A DNA stretch of 63,078 nucleotides, the filler included, from Corallochytrium limacisporum Hawaii (lineage: Eukaryota; Protista; Pluriformea): the NCBI GenBank assembly GCA_002811645.1. It is 4 parts of 4 records of this genome, joined end to end, with 100 filler letters (N's around TTAATTAATTAA, not from the genome) between each part and the next. Parts side by side here need not be neighbours in the genome. Positions count along the whole stretch, not along the records: positions 29,078 to 60,227 come from PDIP01000147.1; 3 more parts are not named here. One strand, 5' to 3'. Within the stretch, counting starts at the first letter, position 1. Every line of letters begins with the position of its first letter. Below the pieces are notes generated by a model. The model did no database searches. It was not told the DNA's origin and worked only from the letters and a program-made list of their open reading frames with translations. Shown here piece after piece: positions 29,078 through 60,764 of the stretch. A program made the translations under genes and the position numbers.

Positions 29078-30003
29078 CCCCCGGGGGGGGGGGGGAGGAG
29101 AAAGTGGCGGGGGAGGAGGAACCATAACAGACCGTGTGCCCCGAATTTTTTTTAGGCACAGAGCGCACAGCTAGTCCTTTCGTATCGATATGGATAGAGG
29201 GGAAATCGATTGAGAAGGTCTGTAGTGGGCCAACCGATCCAACGCTGAGCCATCCGCGACTTACTCACGGCACGGGGGATACAATGGTCCGGAGGACATC
29301 GAGGGCACTGTAGAAACAAGAGTGCCATCTTACAGAGCTGCGACGACTCAGCCATCTTTAAACCCAACTGGCCTGGAGTGCTCTCCTGTTCGGTGGTAGG
29401 ACTTGGTGTACGCTGTAGGGTATAGTACCGGGAAGGAGGAACACATTGTCACCTGAAGCGGCGGGAAAACACCGTATCCCTTATTCGTGGCCCCCGACTC
29501 GATTCGACCTCTCCGGAAATGGCTAATGGGTATGAGTGGTGTGTGGAGTTGTTGCTGCTTGCATTGCATTATTCAGAGGCATTTTCGTTGCAGCGTCTGC
29601 AATATCCTTTAATCGGCCATCGGGGGAGAGGGGGGTGATGGGGGGCTTGGGAAAAAGTTTCTATACTATCTAATCCTTCTCCCTATCTGTGGTGGCACCC
29701 TCCGCGCGAAGTATTTGCACATTATCGAGACCCACTAATCGAAGCAATAGCTTCTTTGTCCCCGTAGATATCTGACAGGTGGAGAATGCCATTCAAATCG
29801 ACGTACTTGAGATGTCCGAAAATGTCGCCTATCGAGACGTTGGCGTACCTGTTGCGGCAAATGATTCACTTCCTACTCGTTAAATCTCGCTGGTTCAACT
29901 ATGACCACCTAACAACGATAGCCTATACGTCAACGGTGAATCTAAGTGGTGACTCTGGTTACTGGAAAATGTAGTACCAACTGTCCAGCTAGTTGCAGTA
30001 GAC

Positions 30004-30981
30004 ATGTTGGTGAAGTCCAATTGGCTTCCTTTGAAAGTTATGGCGTTCGGCTTTCCCCGCAGATCCCGGTCAGTGACTATTCTCTTTGTAGTCGGATTCC
30101 TGCTCCTGCTCCACTGGCAAGGACTCTTCTTTGTAAAAAGAGGAGGTTGGTTGGGACAAAGGATGGGACGAAGGGCTCATATCCAGGAGTATATGTCTCA
30201 TGGGGAGGGATTGGAACAAAATCCCGTATATATGAACGTAATTGTTAGCCTTCGGGGACGGCTCGATCGGCTGCAAGTGCTTATAGACTCACTAACAGGT
30301 GCGGCGGCCGCGCTCCCGGAAAGAGAAAGATTTGTGAGGTTTATTGTCGTCAACTTTGACGCGGGAACAGAGTCGGAAATTGGGGAAATGCTGAAAACGC
30401 TATCCAAGAACTCAAAGATCGAGACTACGCAGATCGAGAAGCGATTGGCCGACGGAGGCTTCTCGAGAGCGGGTGGGATCGCTGCAGCCATCGATGCGGT
30501 CGACAATCCTGAAGACCTAATATTCGTCGTTGATGTCGACATTGTTCTCGGGCCTCGTATTTTCCATGAGATTAAGCGGAATGTTCTGCGTTCGATTCTC
30601 CCGGATAAAATATACTTTCCTGTGGTTCGTATGCTTCGGAAAGGTGAGGACGCGGAATGGAATGAAAGGGGTGAACTTATTGTCCACGATGCGGCGGAAC
30701 CGGAACGGGCTGAGAATGGTGAGCTTATTGAGCCCGAAGATGGCATTGAATTTTGGAATTATCCAGCATTTGGAGTGTTCGCCGTGCACAAGTTCAACTA
30801 TCTCCGTTGCGGAGGCTTCGTAGCCTCTGATCTATCACGCGATGTATGGGGTAAGGAGGACAACCGCATGTTCGATAACTGCAAGCTGCATGGCGTGCCG
30901 ATACAACGGAGCGAAAGCTATTCTATGGCACACATCTTCCACAGCAAGCGACCATGGGGCGTTTCTGCAGACGGAACTTAA
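30004..30981 (+). CDS. Type II membrane GT-A glycosyltransferase, chondroitin GalNAc-transferase/B4GALNT (GT7-related) like
   Basis: N-terminal TM anchor followed by FSRAGGI, LIFVVDVD (DxD), IYFPVV, WGKED and HIFH motifs. Confidence 0.85.
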   Translation: MLVKSNWLPLKVMAFGFPRRSRSVTILFVVGFLLLLHWQGLFFVKRGGWLGQRMGRRAHIQEYMSHGEGLEQNPVYMNVIVSLRGRLDRLQVLIDSLTGAAAALPERERFVRFIVVNFDAGTESEIGEMLKTLSKNSKIETTQIEKRLADGGFSRAGGIAAAIDAVDNPEDLIFVVDVDIVLGPRIFHEIKRNVLRSILPDKIYFPVVRMLRKGEDAEWNERGELIVHDAAEPERAENGELIEPEDGIEFWNYPAFGVFAVHKFNYLRCGGFVASDLSRDVWGKEDNRMFDNCKLHGVPIQRSESYSMAHIFHSKRPWGVSADGT

Positions 30982-31157
30982 GCGAGCAACCTTAGAGCAT
31001 ACATATCAAAACATTACAACATAAATATGCAAGAGATCACCTTTATGAACAGTTTCGGATTTTTGTCAACACGGCAGCAGGCGGTCTTGCTTTGATATTG
31101 TGGTCTCACGTAAGCCCTGTCGTACTCTGTTCGTAAGCAATACTTTAGTGAAGGTGA

Positions 31158-31343
31158 CTGAAAGCGTTAGTAAAGCCTATGCTCGTCACAAGGAAAGGAC
31201 CGAACCTTGGAAGAACGATAAATCTGAAACAAGATGTGAGTGTGAAGGTCATCAAATAATGGATTATGAAAGTATCTTCGTGTCCGGGGAGATGATGAAA
31301 GACACAAGACGGCTTACATAGCACATGAAAACCACGAGCATAC
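31158..31343 (-). other. Putative last intron of the snoRNA host (donor uncertain: GTATGC at 31343 or GTAAGC at 31317)
   Basis: TACTAAC at 31172-31166 followed by GCTTTCAG acceptor ending at 31158. Confidence 0.55.
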
Positions 31344-31598
31344 TGCGTCTGGTGAGTCGCATTTGACCATTGCGCAAATGGCTCTCCCACTTCAGCGCCA
31401 GGGTACTATCATCTGACCTTTGATGTGTTCTCGCTAAGAGATCGTCAACGAGCGTTAGATATCTGACACACCATGCTTCAGTGTGCTCGATTTCCCTAAT
31501 TCTAACATATACCTACCGCATTGCATGCTATTCCAATATGACTTCGATAGTGTCACATAATGCTTTGTGCACACGTTAATGTATGCGAGCGTGTCGAA

Positions 31599-31863
31599 CT
31601 GCAAAAGAGATAAGTGGGCAGGAGGTATCAGTTAGTAACCTGAGAGTATCATTTGAAACGACACGAAGACCGGATACCGGAGTGGAAAGGGCAGTGGAGA
31701 GGTAAGTCCTTGTCAGGTAATAGGAAACGTGATAATTCGTTTGGTCACATATGCATCTTGTGCTTTCGAAGTGAGCTGAGTAAAATTTGCTTCATCGTTC
31801 TGGACCAATTTTCCACTGCTTATGCAGTCCGATTAACTCGGCCTCTCGCGAGGTAGTACTTAC
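31599..31863 (-). other. Spliceosomal intron (265 nt) hosting the U29/snR71-like snoRNA
   Basis: GTAAGT at 31863, TACTAAC at 31637-31631, TCTCTTTTGCAG ending at 31599. Confidence 0.85.
31706..31805 (-). ncRNA. Box C/D snoRNA, U29/snR71-like (LSU rRNA)
   Basis: C-like box ACGATGA (31798-31792) and D box CTGA (31716-31713), with terminal stem GTCC/GGAC and outer stem GCAGTGGA/TCCACTGC. Guides ACTCAGCTCAC and ACGTTTCCTATTA are complementary (one G:U each) to the conserved LSU segment UAAUAGGGAACGUGAGCUGGGU. Confidence 0.85.
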
Positions 31864-31874
31864 AGTTTTGTTTT

Positions 31875-32108
31875 CTGTGGGGCAGAACAGATCTCAAAGG
31901 GTTAAAGTTGTTAGTTAGTATGGTACGCTCCTGTACATACTGAGTCAGATGACGTGGGTGGTTCAGTGCCAAACTCAGCAAATGGTATATTGTCTCATGG
32001 CTCAATAGCTCTGAAGTAGCAAATATAAATCATACCATCATAGCAAGGCGTATTCAAACCGGGAATATTGGACAATCTATATATTCGACCCAATATTGTA
32101 TGACTTAC
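31875..32108 (-). other. Spliceosomal intron (234 nt) hosting the U24/snR24 snoRNA
   Basis: GTAAGT at 32108, TACTAAC at 31920-31914, CTGCCCCACAG ending at 31875. Confidence 0.85.
31970..32046 (-). ncRNA. snR24: Box C/D snoRNA U24/snR24 homologue
   Basis: Boxes: C ATGATGG (32041-32035), D' CAGA, C' ATGAGAC, D CTGA (31978-31975). Guide ATATTTGCTACT pairs with conserved LSU AGUAGCAAAUAU. ATATTTGCTACTTCAGA matches yeast snR24 as recalled, and the D'+5 rule gives the Am1449-equivalent. Confidence 0.88.
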
Positions 32109-32345
32109 CTGCAAGGAATAAAGCTCATTAGCATGCAAAATTGTGTTAGTTGACCCATAGTTGTGAAATGAAGAGATTTAGAATGTGAAGTTGTACTTGC
32201 TCAGAGAAACCTTCAGTTCATCGAAGAAACAAGCCTATCTTGATTATAAAGTTCCTTCTAAGTCAAGAGGTGTCAGAGACGTTTTCTTCAAGGCCACAAC
32301 TTCACACCCCAAGACATGATCCCATGCGCTCCAAAAATTACCTAC
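32109..32345 (-). other. Spliceosomal intron (237 nt) hosting the U60/snR48-like snoRNA
   Basis: AAG|GTAGGT at 32345, ACTAAC at 32150-32145, TTTATTCCTTGCAG ending at 32109. Confidence 0.8.
32196..32296 (-). ncRNA. Box C/D snoRNA, U60/snR48-like (LSU rRNA)
   Basis: C-like box TTGAAGA (32291-32285), C'-like CGATGA and D CTGA (32204-32201). Guide TCTGACACCTCTTG is complementary to LSU (CA)AGAGGUGUCAGA. A perfect 11-bp flanking inverted repeat lies at 32296-32306/32184-32194. Confidence 0.8.
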
Positions 32346-32976
32346 CTTATCAGGGAGAAACGAAGTTCACTATTGCACTTTCTTCCATTGCATGAGGCCA
32401 GCCGCTCTATGGCGGTGGCTGGCCAAGATATCAGCTTCGAAGATTGGCATGGTACGAGTTATCTTCTAGCCCTAATACCTTCATAACGTTTTTTATGGGA
32501 ATGATCTACAATTTCTGGTAGGTGAGTCACCGATAAGTAAATCATTAGGGCATCTGTAGGACACATGAAAACATTACAAAGCCGTGCCCATACAAAGCAG
32601 TGGCACGCACAACACGCGGTATCCCAGCCGTTCTGGCCCCCACGCACACCAGAAGTCGAGTAGGAATGCTTACGTTTAATTCACATAGTTATATATTAGG
32701 GGTTCGGTGTATTTTGAGAAATCAAATGCTGGAGGGGGGTCTGGTTTTCCCTTAGTGACCCCCCTCTTACACAAAGTGATCAACGGGCCTGCAAGAAGCC
32801 TGGATTTCGGTCGTCTGTGGTGTAGGTGTAACCGGAAGGGTGTTTGGTGGCATCAACAGTGCGCTGCCCTACACAAATACACATATGCAAGTGGGTATAT
32901 ACACAAACCCTGCCAGTGGAAGCCCTGTGTAAGCATGCCAGTGGATGTGATAGGTAGTCGGTTTGGCGAATCATGA

Positions 32977-33381
32977 GCTCTAGCCATTTCCTGGTGGCAG
33001 GGCACGCGCCGTCAGAGTCTGACAGACTTAGAGCAGAAGCGTTCCAGCAATGTCATTGTCGTTTACAATGACCGTGGACGTCGCAGCTTTTCAAAGCTTT
33101 GCTTTGTCGATCTTCATGCCTGTGACGATCTTGAAGCCGCGAAACTAGACGAGGAAATGACGCAAAACCTCGAGGATCTGACCTCTGGTCGCGAGCCCAT
33201 AGCCAACTGCGGTAGCTCCATGCTGAGTCAGCTGGTTAGCGACTCCCTGACGCAACAGACCAAGGTGCTATTTGTCAGACACGTCCGTCCTACAGACGCG
33301 GAGGCGAGCGCCGCTTCCCTATCCCTAGCACGTAAGGTAATGGGTCCCAAGGAGAGGAGCTCCACTGAAGTCAGCGTATGA
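32977..33381 (+). pseudogene. Degenerate kinesin motor-domain C-terminal fragment
   Basis: The open frame after TGA 32974-32976 reads ...SKLCFVDLHA...SSMLSQLVSDSLTQQTKVLFVRHVRPTDAEASAASLSLARKV. This resembles kinesin SKL.LVDLAGSE ... SKLT.LL.DSLGG..KT.....ISP....ET..TL.FA.RV, with the switch motifs decayed. Confidence 0.55.
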
Positions 33382-34961
33382 ACCGACAATACCCTAGATT
33401 GATTGAGATGCTCGTCTTCAACATAGTGATGCACGCCTCAGATTATGTATGCATCCAATGTTCTTAGTCGAACACTCCTCGCTTCTGTTGCTCTAGGACG
33501 GTCAGATGCGCATGCGACAATCTCATACGAAAGTTGTCATGGTATGTACAAACCGCCATCACGAAGCGAAAAACTTGCAGCATTGGTTTGACAGAGCGAT
33601 TGAACAGGAACGCATCTACGTATACCTGAATCCGGTCACTTTATTGCAGACCCGCGCAGATTCGCCCCCCCCCCCGGCCGGGGGGAGGGGGGTTCACGGA
33701 CTTCTCAGCACATGACCAAAAGGAAGCAACTAAGACCTAGCAGAACATCAATGACACCTTACGATATAGTTTCAGAGATTGCCACAGGCCTTGTGGTAGG
33801 ATGTATTGTGCTATGCAAATGGTTAGGACCACGGCTGTGTAAGACTTAAATACAGCAGCAGAGTACTATCTCAGTTGTATTTTGATTATCGCTGACGATG
33901 TGGGGTCGTATCGAGTCATCTTGCCTTTGTAGGAAGGTCTGCTAAACACCCAGATTTATGTGATAGCGGTGTCATAAGGAAAGTGGTAGGGTCCCAGTTT
34001 GACAGTAACAGTGTGTCGGCAGAGTATACTGAGTGTGCTCCCAATTTGCAGGGTACTTCGGACAATGATAAACATAATACTAAGAGTTCAAAGAACAGAG
34101 CTCACATGGTCAAACCCGGACGGTAGATATATACAAGACATATGGTCCGATCCGAAGGGCGACATGCCGATGACAACAACGAGCCAGAAACTAGCCAATA
34201 GCATTGGCACCCTACTCCCAGGAATCCCCTCCTATGATCCAATATGGGGTCTTGTAGCTCCAAACTTTGGTGCCACCTCACGTTGCAGAGGGCCACGATA
34301 ATAAATAGCAAAGCCAGACACAGTACGCCCAGGACGACATCTCACCATTGGAAGCGTCATCAACAAGAGGGACGAGCGAGTTGGTCATGGAAAATCGCCA
34401 ACACCACCCCCCCTCCAGGGGCCCCCCGGGGGGGGGGGGGNNNNNNNNNNNNNNNNNNNNNNNNNNNNNNNNNNNNNNNNNNNNNNNNNNNNNNNNNNNN
34501 NNNNNNNNNNNNNCCCCCCAAGGGGGCCCCCGGGGGGGGGGGGAAGAGGGGGGAAGAGCAGATTTGTTAGATGTCGCCAAGATCTCCAAAGTGTGCCATC
34601 TGTTCAAAAGTTTGCTAGGTATCACCAATACGAGACGAAGGCCAATTTTACTTTGTTGCTTTTACCTGCTCTATACGAAGACATCAAGTTCTCAGTAGAT
34701 GGACGAGATCATCGAGTATCGACCAGGTCGAATCGTATTGCTTCCATCTTGTACCACCGTGGGGTTTGGGATGTGGATTTGTCCATGTCGTTGTAATTGA
34801 GATAGTCTAGTTTAGTGCTGAGTAGATAGATACAGTTTAGCATGGACAGAGAAAGGTATATATTGGAGACGGAAAGTTCCGATGAACAGCCAGGGGCGTA
34901 GATCAACATACCAGTCGCCCTAGAGGATGTACTCGTTGGTTCTTGCAAACCAAAACTCACT

Positions 34962-35570
34962 ATGAAGTTCATCTGTGAATCCTTGCTTATGCTTGCTGCC
35001 ATCAGCAGCGTTTTGGATGTCATCCATGCCATGCCCGTCAAGGTTCGTAGGCAGGAGACCGATGTCCACGTTGTTGGAGCAGAATCCGTAGTGGTCGATG
35101 TTGGGAGCACTGCCCGCATTGGAATGCGGCGTTCAAGCGATGCCGACATCCTCGTCATCAGCGGTGCTGACGCAGGTGCTGGAGTCTTTGGCATTGCCGG
35201 CCCTGCTAGCATCCCAACAGAGCCCGCTGCTATCGCCGCTGGCCAAGAAGGTGACCCTGCCCTCGCTGCCCTCGCTGCTGCACCCGCCCGAAAGGCCCTC
35301 CGCCGTGAGACTCCCCGCACCCCTGTCGCCATCAACGGCGGTGACGCAGGCGCCGTTGGCGCTGGAATCTTTGGCATTGCCGGCCCTGCTAGCGTCCCAA
35401 CAGAGCCCGCTGCTACCGCCGCTGGCCAAGAAGGTGACCCTGCCCTCGCTGCCCTCGCTGCTGCACCCGCCCGAAAGGTCCTCCGCCGTGAGACTCGCGG
35501 CAAGCCTGCAGCCATCAACGGCGGTGACATTACCGCCCCTGCTGGCATCCCCGTTCCTGCCGGCCCCTGA
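34962..35570 (+). CDS. Secreted Ala/Gly/Pro-rich repeat protein with dibasic (RR) sites
   Basis: Signal peptide MKFICESLLMLAAISSVLDVIHA, two near-identical 61-aa repeats and four RR sites. Confidence 0.75.
   Translation: MKFICESLLMLAAISSVLDVIHAMPVKVRRQETDVHVVGAESVVVDVGSTARIGMRRSSDADILVISGADAGAGVFGIAGPASIPTEPAAIAAGQEGDPALAALAAAPARKALRRETPRTPVAINGGDAGAVGAGIFGIAGPASVPTEPAATAAGQEGDPALAALAAAPARKVLRRETRGKPAAINGGDITAPAGIPVPAGP
35178..35528 (+). repeat. Intragenic tandem duplication, 183-bp period (about 2 copies)
   Basis: GCTGGA.TCTTTGGCATTGCCGGCCCTGCTAGC starts at 35178 and at 35361, with few mismatches between copies. Confidence 0.95.
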
Positions 35571-53679: not shown

Positions 53680-56600
53680 ATGGCGCCGAAGCCCCAGCGT
53701 CGGGCAACCCTTAAGGGGGCGCCACCACCGCCACCGCCGTTGGAAGAGCCCGGCAGTCAACCCTTTTTGCCGCCACGTGCGAGCGTCAACGGATCCGCGA
53801 CCGACTCGGAAAGTCTGCGGTCGAATAGCGAGGAAACAGTGCGGGAACAGAAGCGCTGTGTTGTACGTCTGCGCCTGCCCGCGGGCACAAGTGCTTTCGC
53901 GGCCACAGCAGAGAAGACAATCTACCATACCCTACGGGACCAACTCAAGTCAAAAATGGTGGACATTGCCACACACGGCATTTACCACGCAGACACATAC
54001 AAACCTGTTGAATTGCTCAAAACCATGGAGTCGATTCATGGCAAAGAGTTGTTGGTGTGTCCGTTGGGTGGGCTGTTCCTGATCAATATCAGCCTCGGAA
54101 GGCAAATTCGGAAAACCTGCCTGTTGGACGGTACAGCACCGGAACTGTATCTGAAAGTCAGCCAACTAACCGGCATGCCCGTTTCGGACCTGGATTTACA
54201 ATTCAGCGACGGGTCAAAACCGGTCAAACTGGACTCTAGCCTCGAAAAATATGCAAAGAAACCAAAGGACGATGCACGGCTCATCAAGGTCAAGGTACTG
54301 CTCAAGAAGCAGGATGAAGAACTGCTGTCCGAGGAGCGTGACTCATTTGGCCAGCTTGTCACGGCCTTCCACAAGGGTGTAAGCAGAGCCGGCAGCGAGG
54401 AAGAGTTGGATTTCATGGACTTCCTGGCGGACACAGACCTGCGTCAACCTCCCAAGATCAAGCGCCTTCACGTCCTCCAGGAACTCATCGAAACGGAACG
54501 CAGTTATCTCAACTCTGTCCGGCAATGTATGGAGTTCTACATGCGACCCATGGTGGCCCAGAAGGTTATCACTAAGGCACAGTCCAACTCATTATTCAGT
54601 AACATGGAGGCACTCCTGGGCATCAACGAGGCTTTATTACGTGACATCCTGTCGCGCGTTCCTGAATCCAACCTTGGGGACACCCAGATTGGTGACCTTT
54701 TCCTGGCCTTTGCGCCATATCTGAAAATGTATAAGGTGTACTTTAGCACTCACGCCGAAGCCCAGAATCAACTTGCTGGCATGGTCAGTATGAACGATCA
54801 GCTGGCGCAGTTCCTCAAGGAGCGTGGTACATTTGGAGTACCAACCATGGACAGTCTGCTGCTCATGCCCATTCAGCGTGTGCCGCGATACAGTCTGATG
54901 CTCCAGCAGATGCTCAGAGCCACTGGGGAGGATCATGCCGACCTGCACGCACTGGAAGCCGCTGTGACGGAAATCGGAGGCCTGACCAAGGACCTCAACG
55001 AAAGTGTAAAGAAGATTGAGAACCAGGTCAAGCTCATGGAAATTGAGCGGGGCTTCCCATCCGACGTACTGTCCCTACTGGACACCATGAACGTTGGTAC
55101 AGTACGTGTCTATAACAATCGTCGATCGACGATGACGCCAAATGACTCCCTTAGCTCCGCAGATCTCGCCGAGTTGGTAAATGGTAAGCGTGGACAGTCA
55201 CCGTCACTCAAACGTCGACTCTTCGGCGGAGGCAACAGTGCCACCAATGGCACCCGGTCCAGTGGACGTGGATCGGTCCACAGCGGCATGGGTGTTGTTG
55301 AGGAAGGGCAGGTCAACGGCCAACAGCGCATCATGCGCAACATTGGCAATCCCTTTGACGTCAACGAAGCAAGTCGCTGGTTTGTCATCGAGGGACCTGC
55401 GATGGAGGCAGTCACAGGCGACTTTAAACAGCGCCAGCGCCATCTGTTCCTGTTCAGTGATTTATTGGTCGTGGCCAACCGCAAAGGACAGCTCGCCAAC
55501 GGGAAGCCGTCGTACCGTCTGCAGTCGTGGATGCCCCTCCACGAGCTCTGGGTCGCCGACGAAGCCGTGCAATTAGATCAGAAGTCTCTGGTCGTCGGCT
55601 GGCCCGGCAGTGAGTTTACGTTCACGTTCGAGAACAAGACCGAGAAACAGATCTGGGTGGCTAAGCTCAAAGAATGGGTCACCAAGGCAAAGGGTGATAA
55701 CTACACTAAAGGTTTGGTCAAGGTCTTTGGAGACCTCTTGATTCCTCCCAATTTGCTCGGTAAAGGTGACATGGTCGACAACATGTCCTCCTGCGATGAT
55801 CTCATCAAGAAGGTTGCCCCCAAGCTCTTGGGCAAGAAGACGGGAGTGGACTTCAAGTCGTATTGCCTGTGGGCCATGATCCCGGGCCCCCAGTCGAAGC
55901 TCAAACGTCTCAACAACTACGAGTGCCCTTTGCTGCTCACGCAGTTTTGGGAGCGTCTGCACAGCGAAATGGTTTCACTCAGCGGGGACGCCCTCCTCGA
56001 TCCCGCGCTTGTGCCCACCCCGGGCGCCGCGACGGATACCGCCACAAGAAAGCGTGCCGTGCTGTACCTGAGGCACGTAGCGGATGTCCGCGATGTCGAC
56101 CCAGAGAATGTGCGTGCGGCTGCAATGCAGAACCCCGACGACATCATTGCGGCAATCGGAGAGAGTGCCGCAGCAGACCGTGTGAATAACGCGACCAAGT
56201 CCGGTGCGGAACTCGGCGGCAGTCTCAAGGTTGGCAACAAGGGCTCACAGCAAGTTCCTTCTGGCCCCGCTACGGTGGGCCGTGGTGGTACCATCCGCGG
56301 CAAACTCGCCAATCTGTTCGTGAAAGACTCGTCGAATTCCACTGCTGATCCCAGTAAGCTGTTGCGTGGAAACTCAAGCCTCCTCGAGGCCGAGGAAGCC
56401 TCCGACGGACTCTTTGGTCTGCCCTTGCCCAAGGTGTGCGTGGACGGCAAGCCACCGAAGCCCATCTACGACATGCTGGACACCCTCTGGGACAATGCCC
56501 CAGGCTGCCAGGGCGTGTTCCGTCGCAGTGCTAATGCGCGCGTGGTACGTGAGCTGTCCGAAAAGATGGATGCTGGTGAGACGGAAATTTCCTTCCGCGA

Positions 56601-57129
56601 TGAGAATGTTCTGGCGGTCGGCGCTGCCCTGAAGAGTTACCTGCGGTCCATTCCGGACTCGCTCTTCAACACGGTCAACTACCGCAAATTTATCGACACC
56701 AACGCCATTGCAGGTGATGATCAGCGCGTTGTGGAACTCAGCAACTTGCTGGCCAAGTTGCCGGATGAGAATCGCCTGCTCATTCGCTTGATTGTTCACG
56801 TTCTGAAGCATGTCGCTGCCAAGCACGAGTCAAACTTGATGGATGCCAGCAACTTGGGTATTTGCGTCGGACCGTCTATGATTTGGTCCCAAGACGCTAT
56901 GGATATGGCCCGCAATGACGTTGCTCCGTTGATTGAATTCATGATTGACTGTGCTGACCAACTTTTCCCGGACTTCACACGCGAGGAGCTCATCCTTGTT
57001 GGAGAACCCGAGACGGACCCCGAATCAGACGCAACCAACACCACGGCCGGAGTCGAGGTCAAGGGGGAGGACGCCCCCAACCAGGTCGGCACCCCACTGA
57101 TTGAGATCCCGGAGGATGCTGAGTTCTGA
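53680..57129 (+). CDS. Multidomain Rho regulator: RBD/ubiquitin-like + DH (RhoGEF) + PH + RA + RhoGAP (ARHGAP20/TAGAP-like)
   Basis: First ATG at 53680 (MAPKPQRR). DH motifs ELIETERSY and LLLMPIQRVPRY; PH motif RHLFLFSDLLVVA...VVGWP; RhoGAP motifs LFGLPL, GVFRRSAN (Arg finger), ALKSYLRSIP and NLMDASNLGICVGP. Confidence 0.92.
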   Translation: MAPKPQRRATLKGAPPPPPPLEEPGSQPFLPPRASVNGSATDSESLRSNSEETVREQKRCVVRLRLPAGTSAFAATAEKTIYHTLRDQLKSKMVDIATHGIYHADTYKPVELLKTMESIHGKELLVCPLGGLFLINISLGRQIRKTCLLDGTAPELYLKVSQLTGMPVSDLDLQFSDGSKPVKLDSSLEKYAKKPKDDARLIKVKVLLKKQDEELLSEERDSFGQLVTAFHKGVSRAGSEEELDFMDFLADTDLRQPPKIKRLHVLQELIETERSYLNSVRQCMEFYMRPMVAQKVITKAQSNSLFSNMEALLGINEALLRDILSRVPESNLGDTQIGDLFLAFAPYLKMYKVYFSTHAEAQNQLAGMVSMNDQLAQFLKERGTFGVPTMDSLLLMPIQRVPRYSLMLQQMLRATGEDHADLHALEAAVTEIGGLTKDLNESVKKIENQVKLMEIERGFPSDVLSLLDTMNVGTVRVYNNRRSTMTPNDSLSSADLAELVNGKRGQSPSLKRRLFGGGNSATNGTRSSGRGSVHSGMGVVEEGQVNGQQRIMRNIGNPFDVNEASRWFVIEGPAMEAVTGDFKQRQRHLFLFSDLLVVANRKGQLANGKPSYRLQSWMPLHELWVADEAVQLDQKSLVVGWPGSEFTFTFENKTEKQIWVAKLKEWVTKAKGDNYTKGLVKVFGDLLIPPNLLGKGDMVDNMSSCDDLIKKVAPKLLGKKTGVDFKSYCLWAMIPGPQSKLKRLNNYECPLLLTQFWERLHSEMVSLSGDALLDPALVPTPGAATDTATRKRAVLYLRHVADVRDVDPENVRAAAMQNPDDIIAAIGESAAADRVNNATKSGAELGGSLKVGNKGSQQVPSGPATVGRGGTIRGKLANLFVKDSSNSTADPSKLLRGNSSLLEAEEASDGLFGLPLPKVCVDGKPPKPIYDMLDTLWDNAPGCQGVFRRSANARVVRELSEKMDAGETEISFRDENVLAVGAALKSYLRSIPDSLFNTVNYRKFIDTNAIAGDDQRVVELSNLLAKLPDENRLLIRLIVHVLKHVAAKHESNLMDASNLGICVGPSMIWSQDAMDMARNDVAPLIEFMIDCADQLFPDFTREELILVGEPETDPESDATNTTAGVEVKGEDAPNQVGTPLIEIPEDAEF

Positions 57130-58485: not shown

Positions 58486-60764
58486 GGTTGCGTAATTCGA
58501 ATGGTAGGTTTAAACTCTTGGGTTGGTGATATGTACAAAAGTTAGAGGATGTGTTTCGTGGTGAGCCTATGACTAACAAGATTTCTTTAACTTTGCGCGT
58601 TGGAACTTTAGAACCCGTCCGTCGTCGCAATAAAAGAAATTGACGTGGGAGTAGACCCGTTCGCTAGCAAATGACGGAAGTGGTCCGAGAATTTGATAAT
58701 TTGCGAAAGGCATACGGTTGCTCAAGTAAGTATGCTTGTCAGTCACAAATAGCCAACGGCTATTCAAAAAAAAAACTAGCACAGATCTGTGTGACATTGG
58801 TCCCTGCGGAAAGCAGTACACCGGACACATGTAAAAATTGCAAAATGTCAGCCGAAAAAGACAATCAAGAACAAGGAAGGTTCCGAACACCAAACTTCAC
58901 AAGACCCCAAAGGCTCCGCCAAAGACTCGCCCGGCAAAACCCCCACTACCGGGCCCAGCTTCGCCATTCCCGGACACTTGTGTCTTTACCCACACGCTCG
59001 CCTGCGTGTGCGTTGTGCGTTGTGCGTGTGCGTGTGCGTGCGAGATGCCACACCGCTCCCGACTCTGCCGCTTGCTGCTGCTGCCGCCTCACCTTCCCCC
59101 GTCGTCGTCCGTTTTTAGTTTTTTCTTTAATTTTTTTGCTGGGGACCGGTGGTGCCAAGCCAGGCCAAGCCACACAGTCTCAGCAGCCAACGGCGTGTGT
59201 AGCGTGTGCGTGTGTGTCTCCAGTCCTCTCCGCTAAAAACCCCCAGTGGTCCCCCCTCCCTCCCCCTGTGCCGAGTCCGCGGGTGTGTGTGTGAAGGTCA
59301 GCAAACGTCTCTTCCCGTCTCTCGGTCTCACTGTCTCTCTCTCTGTGTCTGTACGGCCCGGGAAGAAAAAGGCCCGTTCTTTTTCTCTTGCTCGGAGGGG
59401 GTTTGCTGTCAGCGGCGCCGGGCAAAAAAGAGAGGGCCACGGGCTCCCGGGAGGCTTCTTTTCCTTTTTTTCATTTGTTCCTTCCTTCCCGAAGGAATGG
59501 GTCCCGAGGGGCACCGGGCAAGAAAAGGGGGCCGTGTTTTTGGGCATTCATTGGGTATAGAGACAGACAGAGAGAGAGAGTGTGTGGGACGCAGGGTGTG
59601 TGTGTGTGTGTGAGTGGCAAAAATTCGGAAACAAGAATTTAACAAAAAATAACCGGCCAGCCACAAAGGAAGAAAAAAAGGGAGAGAAAAAAAAGGCGAA
59701 TGAAATGAAAAGAAAAGAANNNNNNNNNNNNNNNNNNNNNNNNNNNNNNNNNNNNNNNNNNNNNNNNNNNNNNNNNNNNNNNNNNNNNNNNNNNNNNNNN
59801 NNNNNNNNNNNNNNNNNNNNNNNNNNNNNNNNNNNNNNNNNNNNNNNNNNNNNNNNNNNNNNNNNNNNNNNNNNNNNNNNNNNNNNNNNNNNNNNNNNNN
59901 NNNNNNNNNNNNNNNNNNNNNNNNNGGGGGGGGTGCACGAAATGCTCGCACGAGGCCCGGCTATATATAGACTATATATACGGGTATTTTAAATAATACC
60001 ATACTGTGATAATAGATACATATATAAATATGCAAAATAATATTATTATATACTGAATATATAAAATATAGAGGCGGGTCTGTGGGCCACGCTCCGAAGT
60101 GTTGCATTCCCCGCACTCTCTTTCGCACTCTCTCTCTCTCTCACTCTCCCTCTCTCCCCCGAAGCATATCTTTCACCCACCTCCCTTTCATTTTTAATTC
60201 AATTTTGGTTTATGTTTTTTTTGGGGGNNNNNNNNNNNNNNNNNNNNNNNNNNNNNNNNNNNNNNNNNNNNTTAATTAATTAANNNNNNNNNNNNNNNNN
60301 NNNNNNNNNNNNNNNNNNNNNNNNNNNGGGGGGGGTGTGTGTGAGGGGGAGAGGGAGGGACAGGGCCAAGACGTGGCCCTTTCTCCTACTCTTGGTTACG
60401 ACCTGAAAAAGGAAAGAAATTTTTTCCAAGACGGGCCAGCATAGTGAATGAATTGTGAGTTTTGTTGGTGTTGAGTCGATGGTCTCCTTGCTGCACGGTC
60501 ACCCCGGCCTCGTAGATCGAAGGACGTAGCAAACAGGCACCGGCACCCCCGCGCACACAGAGCACGGAACAGAAATTCACGCTTGCTCAGGACAACACTG
60601 TACATCTCAAATGAGAAGCAATTGTGATATTTAAGAGATCCAGGTACCGCAAACTGAGCGCGAATAGGCCAAGATCAGACAGCCCAAACAAAGGACGAAA
60701 GGTATAAAGAAACAAAAGCAAGCATGGTTCCGGATCCCTAAACTGTACAGTCACAACACTAGCT

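Follow-up and report, generated by a model that had tools for sequence, protein, structure and literature searches.

Stacked box C/D snoRNA introns in a probable non-coding host gene of Corallochytrium limacisporum

Non-coding snoRNA host genes of animals such as GAS5 and UHG/SNHG1 have short disposable exons and carry one C/D snoRNA per intron, which precedes the branch site by some tens of nucleotides. To our knowledge, no zero-nucleotide exon is known from hosts of this type. The function of GAS5 as snoRNA host is documented (PMC10835520). In fungi, the polycistronic snoRNA clusters I-III reside in non-coding hosts, exonless juxtaposed introns are widespread with at least 61 cases of exon loss, and stepwise products have been described (PMC3596301). 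In S. pombe, SPNCRNA.445 has a zero-length exon and undergoes recursive splicing, and SPNCRNA.659 contains five snoRNA introns (10.1101/226894). Furthermore, the snoRNA-hosting introns of RPL7 and NOG2 have been retained in intron-poor fungi, for which the snoRNA cargo is the published reason (PMC8476143). For the protist Corallochytrium limacisporum, 0.0 introns per kb coding sequence and reduced EJC, NMD and SR factors have been reported (PMC5560861). A literature search with little coverage of subscription journals found no paper on snoRNA hosts in Corallochytrium and none that combines this genus with introns and snoRNAs.

The window analyzed here is a stretch of 63,078 nucleotides from C. 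limacisporum Hawaii, and all coordinates refer to its full length. The 31-kb piece between 29078 and 60227 (PDIP01000147.1) very probably harbours a non-coding polycistronic snoRNA host gene on the minus strand, which extends from about 32375 to below 31126 and has four GT-AG introns yielding four candidate guide RNAs for the LSU rRNA (Table 1). The earlier note on this DNA had proposed such a non-coding host, and the proposal is now supported by spliced junctions, by rRNA complementarity in the +5 register and by the lack of any ORF over 40 codons. The locus resembles GAS5 and UHG/SNHG1 in its short exons and in having one C/D candidate per intron some tens of nucleotides before the branch site; however, these animal genes sit in intron-rich genomes, and the likeness is one of architecture. 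It shares with the fungal clusters I-III the non-coding host, the arrangement of one C/D snoRNA per intron, the tiny or absent internal exons, and the removal of the first intron while later ones are retained (PMC3596301). In contrast to these clusters, the snoRNA set is not snR78-72, snR57-55-61 or snR41-70-51, the gene belongs to an opisthokont-like protist that is neither fungus nor animal, and introns 3 and 4 can leave before the earlier ones. As in the two S. pombe genes, a zero-length exon occurs in a snoRNA host and an unannotated host comprises multiple snoRNA introns, but S. pombe possesses thousands of introns, and recursion was demonstrated there by spliceosome profiling and RT-PCR whereas here its first step is seen. 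The RPL7 and NOG2 hosts are protein-coding with one snoRNA each, unlike the non-coding multi-intron host described here; in both cases, snoRNA cargo would account for the retention of introns in an intron-poor genome.

Long single-ORF genes of the 31-kb piece include those for a chondroitin GalNAc-transferase-like protein, SHPRH, an LRR protein, a RhoGEF-RhoGAP protein and Tim17. Seven single ORFs are identical letter for letter to EukProt proteins and are therefore annotated without introns, which supports the previous view that protein genes in this region are intronless. The RhoGEF-PH-RhoGAP fusion (53680-57129, plus strand) is a single ORF as well. Another plus-strand gene (34962-35570) encodes a protein of 202 aa, rich in Ala, Gly and Pro, whose N-terminus resembles a signal peptide and which contains a near-perfect repeat of ~60 aa; the protein is present in EukProt and has no Pfam match. 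The closest EukProt relatives of Tim17 are found in Colp12 (70%) and Opistho-2 (67%), which we take to be Syssomonas and Pigoraptor, respectively. In a phylogenetic tree, Tim17 is placed outside the animal and fungal clades, with no finer resolution.

The splice signals at the host locus are strict, yeast-like and clustered. Intron-poor genomes typically have strict ACTAAC branch sites (PMC2483917). The coordinates and lengths of the three consecutive introns predicted before (237, 234 and 265 nt) are correct, and each has the predicted GT donor (GTAGGT or GTAAGT), ACTAAC branch and CAG. The branch-to-acceptor distance is 33-40 nt in all four host introns. The 31-kb piece has four TACTAAC copies on its two strands, three of which lie in the 1.2-kb minus-strand host stretch (P about 3e-5, post hoc), and four of the 13 GTARGT donors of the piece lie within 1.2 kb of this one strand (P about 1e-4, post hoc). 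Other splice sites that had been suggested did not hold. The CAG of a fourth acceptor at 31158 is only 7 nt away from the branch A, and the real acceptor is found at 31127, where a contig joint occurs. Hence, the donor of a proposed 83-nt intron (31516-31434) is genuine, the intron that starts there being a single one of 390 nt. For the acceptor 31158, for the 83-nt intron and for an intron 31317-31158, which was also considered, no junction exists in the contigs. The proposed intron 32673-32554 has no ACTAAC, no junction support and lies outside the contig-covered region. The stretch 32554-32700 (minus strand) shows an AT-rich TATA-like sequence followed by GTAAGC and later TACAG, and may contain a weak upstream start. 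A GC-rich hairpin at 32396..32424 (minus strand; z -3.05, 0/200 shuffles) lies some 20 nt before the points where the contigs begin and could represent a promoter element or a processing signal. Elsewhere in the piece, the sole other strong intron-like set directly follows an ATG on the plus strand (58501-58611), with a GTAGGT donor at 58504, a GACTAAC branch A at 58576 and TTTAG at 58611. Its branch-to-acceptor distance of 35 nt is like that of the host introns; it is divergent from Tim17, 16 nt from the Tim17 start codon, and the downstream frame is short with no evident snoRNA.

Table 1. Coordinates of the probable host gene, its neighbour and the box C/D candidates in the window (LSU positions in yeast numbering)
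Feature	Position	Strand	Remarks
Exon 1	32346..32375	-	about 30 nt; 5' end approximate; contig starts at 32372 and 32375
Intron 1	32109..32345	-	237 nt; GTAGGT donor, ACTAAC (branch A 32146), CAG; spliced joint in X2
Zero-nucleotide exon	32108..32109	-	intron 1 3' splice site abuts intron 2 5' splice site, CAG|GTAAGT
Intron 2	31875..32108	-	234 nt; GTAAGT, TACTAAC (branch A 31915), CAG; predicted from sequence, retained in all contigs
Exon 2	31864..31874	-	11 nt; between CAG 31875 (predicted 5' boundary) and verified donor 31863
Intron 3	31599..31863	-	265 nt; GTAAGT, TACTAAC (branch A 31632), CAG; joint in X1
Exon 3	31517..31598	-	82 nt; both boundaries from joints
Intron 4	31127..31516	-	390 nt; GTAGGT, TACTAAC (branch A 31167), CAG at 31127; joint in X1 and X2
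Last exon	30982..31126	-	3' end provisional; joined to exon 3 in both runs; overlaps 3' region of convergent glycosyltransferase gene
Chondroitin N-acetylgalactosaminyltransferase-like gene	30004..30981	+	single ORF, convergent with host; PF05679 E 1.7e-14; contig-covered
sno1, box C/D candidate	32198..32295	-	C UUGAAGA 32291-32285; D CUGA 32204-32201
sno1 guide	32277-32266	-	pairs with LSU 2790-2801
sno1 probable D'	32262-32259	-	CUUA, degenerate; probable target G2791
sno1 flanking stem	32306-32296/32194-32184	-	11 bp
sno2, box C/D candidate	31970..32046	-	C AUGAUGG 32041-32035; D CUGA 31978-31975
sno2 guide and D'	32026-32015; D' 32013-32010	-	12-nt guide; D' CAGA; predicted target A1449, next nt G1450
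sno2 C'	31998-31992	-	AUGAGAC; from sequence
sno2 UACCAU	31987-31982	-	can pair with LSU 1441-1446
sno3, double-guide box C/D candidate	31710..31802	-	C ACGAUGA 31798-31792
sno3 D'	31769-31766	-	UCGA; 11 bp (one G-U), predicted target A2946, U29/snR71 site
sno3 D	31716-31713	-	CUGA; 15 bp, predicted target U2935
sno4, long box C/D candidate	31245..31420	-	176 nt; terminal stem 7 bp, 31420-31414/31251-31245
sno4 boxes	C 31412-31406; D 31255-31252	-	C AUGAUAG, D UUGA; A-U replaces usual G-C box pair
sno4 guide	31266-31258	-	+5 register with LSU U2314
sno4 internal CUGA	31395	-	may be D'

Evidence for splicing came from the contigs of two public runs (X1 and X2, two near-identical runs of 2015 from two studies), which were aligned to 29700-34300. 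The run type in the records is a guess; that X1 and X2 are RNA is indicated by their spliced joints and by the stretch 32472-33857, which has no contig coverage in either run. Three CT..AC joints, i.e. GT-AG on the minus strand, were found at introns 1, 3 and 4, hence introns 1 and 3 of the earlier note are spliced at the expected ends, while neither the removal of intron 2 nor a fully spliced product was seen in these contigs, which show presence and not absence. In the same sense, a contig start does not prove the transcript start at exon 1. The contigs of the host continue beyond the last exon into the neighbouring glycosyltransferase gene, and one X2 contig is continuous from 32375 to 29852. 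This continuity would fit introns of a protein-coding gene or its untranslated region, and assembly artefacts might be suspected behind the joints, but we regard both ideas as hardly credible. A contig across two genes does not show a single transcript, the minus-strand ORFs at the locus are only shadows of the plus-strand gene, and the longest ATG ORF of the exons, joined for this measurement, has 40 codons. Moreover, each joint coincides precisely with GT-AG signals, and one joint is common to both runs. Between 29852 and 32105, X2 differs from the window by five listed substitutions and small deletions, none of them listed inside sno2 or sno3, a number too small to bear on conservation. These differences suggest a second strain; two almost identical strains of C. 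limacisporum are known (10.1101/2020.11.12.379420). An X1 contig has at 29888 a loose end of 29 nt that matches nothing in the window and shows no splice signal at the join, which is probably an assembly chimera.

Between introns 1 and 2 of the probable host gene there is no exon. In X2, the sequence passes from exon 1 straight into the GTAAGT of the intron 2 donor, with 33 letters on the shorter side of the joint, and this first-step intermediate was found in that run only. The juxtaposed AG|GT at 32109/32108 rebuilds a consensus donor, as is characteristic of recursive splicing. Most likely, introns 1 and 2 are removed stepwise: joining of exon 1 at the 32109 AG, the observed first step, would rebuild the donor AAG|GTAAGT, from which intron 2 would leave in a second step. 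Since CAG|GTAAGT by itself matches the donor consensus, intron 2 might also be removed ahead of intron 1; such a form was not seen in the contigs. Introns 3 and 4 can leave with earlier introns still in place, and a 60-nt X1 contig lacks intron 3 and still contains the end of intron 2, hence the order of splicing is not strictly 5' to 3'. It might alternatively be argued that 32109 is a mere alternative acceptor, so that introns 1 and 2 are parts of a single dicistronic intron of 471 nt or intron 2 is kept as exon, and that nucleases free sno2. Intron 2 is indeed kept in every contig, even in the short one from which intron 3 has been removed, Luo et al. were likewise unable to separate stepwise splicing from alternative acceptor use (PMC3596301), and RNase III is known to assist in releasing snoRNAs that share a host (PMC12508059). 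However, intron 2 possesses a perfect donor, a TACTAAC and a CAG of its own, spaced as in the verified introns. In addition, k-mer contigs lose rare or short forms, and the 11-nt exon 2, which is shorter than the assembly word, is hard to recover. We therefore consider the alternative acceptor an unlikely explanation and prefer stepwise removal.

In the proposed mechanism, one minus-strand transcript of polymerase II would undergo four splicing events by the major spliceosome, and the exons (about 30, 0, 11 and 82 nt plus the last exon) would act as spacers. Besides the second step at intron 2, we infer lariat processing, mature RNAs and rRNA methylation as parts of this model. Each intron would form its own lariat, from which debranching and trimming, the established pathway for intronic snoRNAs (PMC12508059), would yield one box C/D RNA. 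The guides may then direct 2'-O-methylation of the LSU rRNA in the G2791 region and at A1449/G1450, A2946, possibly U2935, and U2314 (yeast numbering).

One box C/D candidate was found in each of the four introns. This agrees with the earlier assignment of one candidate with LSU complementarity to each of introns 1-3 and adds a fourth, sno4, which had been missed. C-like and D-like boxes with 0-2 departures from the consensus each are present in all four candidates, although several boxes are non-canonical, and box D lies 55, 60, 81 and 85 nt upstream of the branch A. Terminal or flanking stems are clear in sno1 and sno4 and weaker in sno2 and sno3. The search of Rfam that had been suggested gave no match for the host region at the gathering threshold, but relaxed E-values revealed minus-strand matches of introns 1-3 to C/D families (snoR1, snoR64, snR71, DdR16, TtnuCD4, SNORD24), all sub-threshold. 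Targets were located on the rDNA of other species, using contigs from public collections that are yeast-like or stem from further eukaryotes. Short rRNA search patterns were built from the guides of the window, and comparisons were made on the retrieved sequences. Contig L011 represents a complete yeast-like unit, and its numbering matches 57/57 yeast-numbered methylation sites by base identity. All rDNA loci have a GC content below 58%, and none was taken as human. As a side observation, at least 80 genome records of bacteria and archaea (L005-L084) carry eukaryotic rDNA contaminant contigs, among them several full yeast-like repeat units. Guides in the +5 register exist for A1449, A2946 and the U2314 equivalent, which are methylated in other eukaryotes (PMC8817022 table 1; PMC11014333 table 1; PMC10835520). 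Collectively, the candidates share rRNA target regions and register with snR24/U24/U76, snR71/U29, snR48/snoR1/U60 and SNORD17, with Rfam scores that stay below threshold.

The family labels U60-like, U24 and U29-like given before had to be modified in part. The sno1 candidate forms a perfect complement of 12-13 bp with non-ascomycete rRNA loci, which covers both G2791 and G2793, and it reached an E-value of 0.015 with snoR1 (25.6 bits vs a gathering value of 49; clan CL00066, SNORD60/snR48/snoR1). The label snoR1/snR48 (G2791) would suit sno1 no less than U60. An exact search of metagenomes for the sno1 guide region gave 0 matches. The guide of sno2 forms 12 Watson-Crick pairs that place A1449 at +5, the best in-register match of the whole piece, and its Rfam similarities are weak (snoR64, snR61 and SNORD24, the latter with 16.3 bits vs 41). 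At its box D, no in-register duplex was found for C1437 (human C2338), the second site of a U24. In yeast, the D' guide of snR24 is directed to A1449/G1450, and the human equivalent A2350 is guided by U76 (site equivalences in PMC8817022). Since sno2 combines the A1449 guide with the lack of a C1437 guide, its function may correspond to that of human U76 or of the D' part of yeast snR24, not to that of a full U24.

The U29/snR71 site of sno3 was recognized before, and a second guide has now been added. Its Rfam matches are weak (snR71 with 22.1 bits vs 60, DdR16, TtnuCD4), and the pair of guides for A2946 and U2935 recurs in the Rfam consensus of TtnuCD4. A double-guide pattern search in metagenomes gave 2 matches and no second cluster. 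One of them, L085 (1-165), is a fungal-like contig with a C/D RNA for A2946 and U2935 in an apparent intron of a protein gene, and is a plausible relative; the other, L086, was rejected as chance match. U2935 is absent from the methylation tables of fly and Dictyostelium (PMC8817022, PMC11014333).

The candidate sno4 would be a long guide RNA for U2314. Its duplex comprises 9 bp and 4 further pairs. Guide-plus-box matches of 9-11 bp arise by chance at about 0.2 per kb, hence the case for sno4 rests on the combination of its features and not on a 9-bp guide with a D-like box alone. It is the sole C/D kink-turn with a stem of at least 6 bp in the piece (1/3000 shuffles), a motif that was defined along canonical lines after sno4 had been seen. 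U2314 is located 33 nt after A2281, and fly Psi-m2692, Dictyostelium Um2580 and human U3797 are also found 33 nt after the corresponding A (human A3764; fly and Dictyostelium tables in PMC8817022 and PMC11014333). In human 28S rRNA, U3797 is guided by the 237-nt SNORD17 (PMC10835520). No similarity of sno4 to SNORD17 or any other Rfam family was found at E-values up to 10. From its predicted site and length, sno4 might work like SNORD17, with which it has the target and the unusual length in common and nothing more, and it was not assigned to this family. A search for H/ACA pockets in intron 4 gave weak matches and no convincing boxes. U3, U13, U14 and U17 were rejected for this intron as their motifs and Rfam matches are absent. 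Just upstream of the intron 4 branch site, the segment 31195-31184 (minus strand) resembles the U13/snR45 complement to the 18S 3' end (10/12); it is not followed by a box D and was treated as chance.

One may ask whether only some of the introns contain working snoRNAs, with sno4 and the second guide of sno3 being chance or degenerate matches and the spliced RNA having a role of its own, for example as antisense RNA of the glycosyltransferase gene. The core duplex of 9 bp and the missing Rfam support of sno4 would be compatible with such a role, as would the overlap of the last exon with the 3' region of the convergent gene. However, the kink-turn of sno4 is unique in the piece, its stem has 7 bp, its box pair is compensatory, its guide is in correct register on a conserved site, and its distance to the branch site is much the same as in sno3. 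As for sno3, both L085 and the TtnuCD4 consensus of Rfam contain its second guide as well. Hence, this partial view appears very improbable, and a host gene with four guide candidates remains the preferred reading.

Exonless stacked snoRNA introns are already known from fungi; new are the lineage, the snoRNA set and the candidate for a long U2314 guide. Within the opisthokonts, the locus takes this architecture beyond the fungi and onto the animal side, and it provides four guide RNA candidates that are missed by Rfam thresholds, including the long one for the SNORD17 site. Stable transfection is available for Corallochytrium (10.1101/2020.11.12.379420), therefore recursive splicing and splice-dependent snoRNA release become directly testable. 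The earlier note had suggested that splicing persists here mainly to release snoRNAs, a hypothesis that concerns the whole genome rather than one 31-kb piece. In a more far-reaching view, which we put forward as a rather doubtful possibility, much of the remaining splicing in this holozoan, whose protein genes have lost almost all introns, might serve exonless recursive snoRNA hosts that arose independently of fungi, and its spliceosome might chiefly be a machine for snoRNA maturation. Intron counts based on coding sequences would miss such host genes. The host gene described here offers a compact, transcript-supported case for why introns survive where protein genes have lost theirs.
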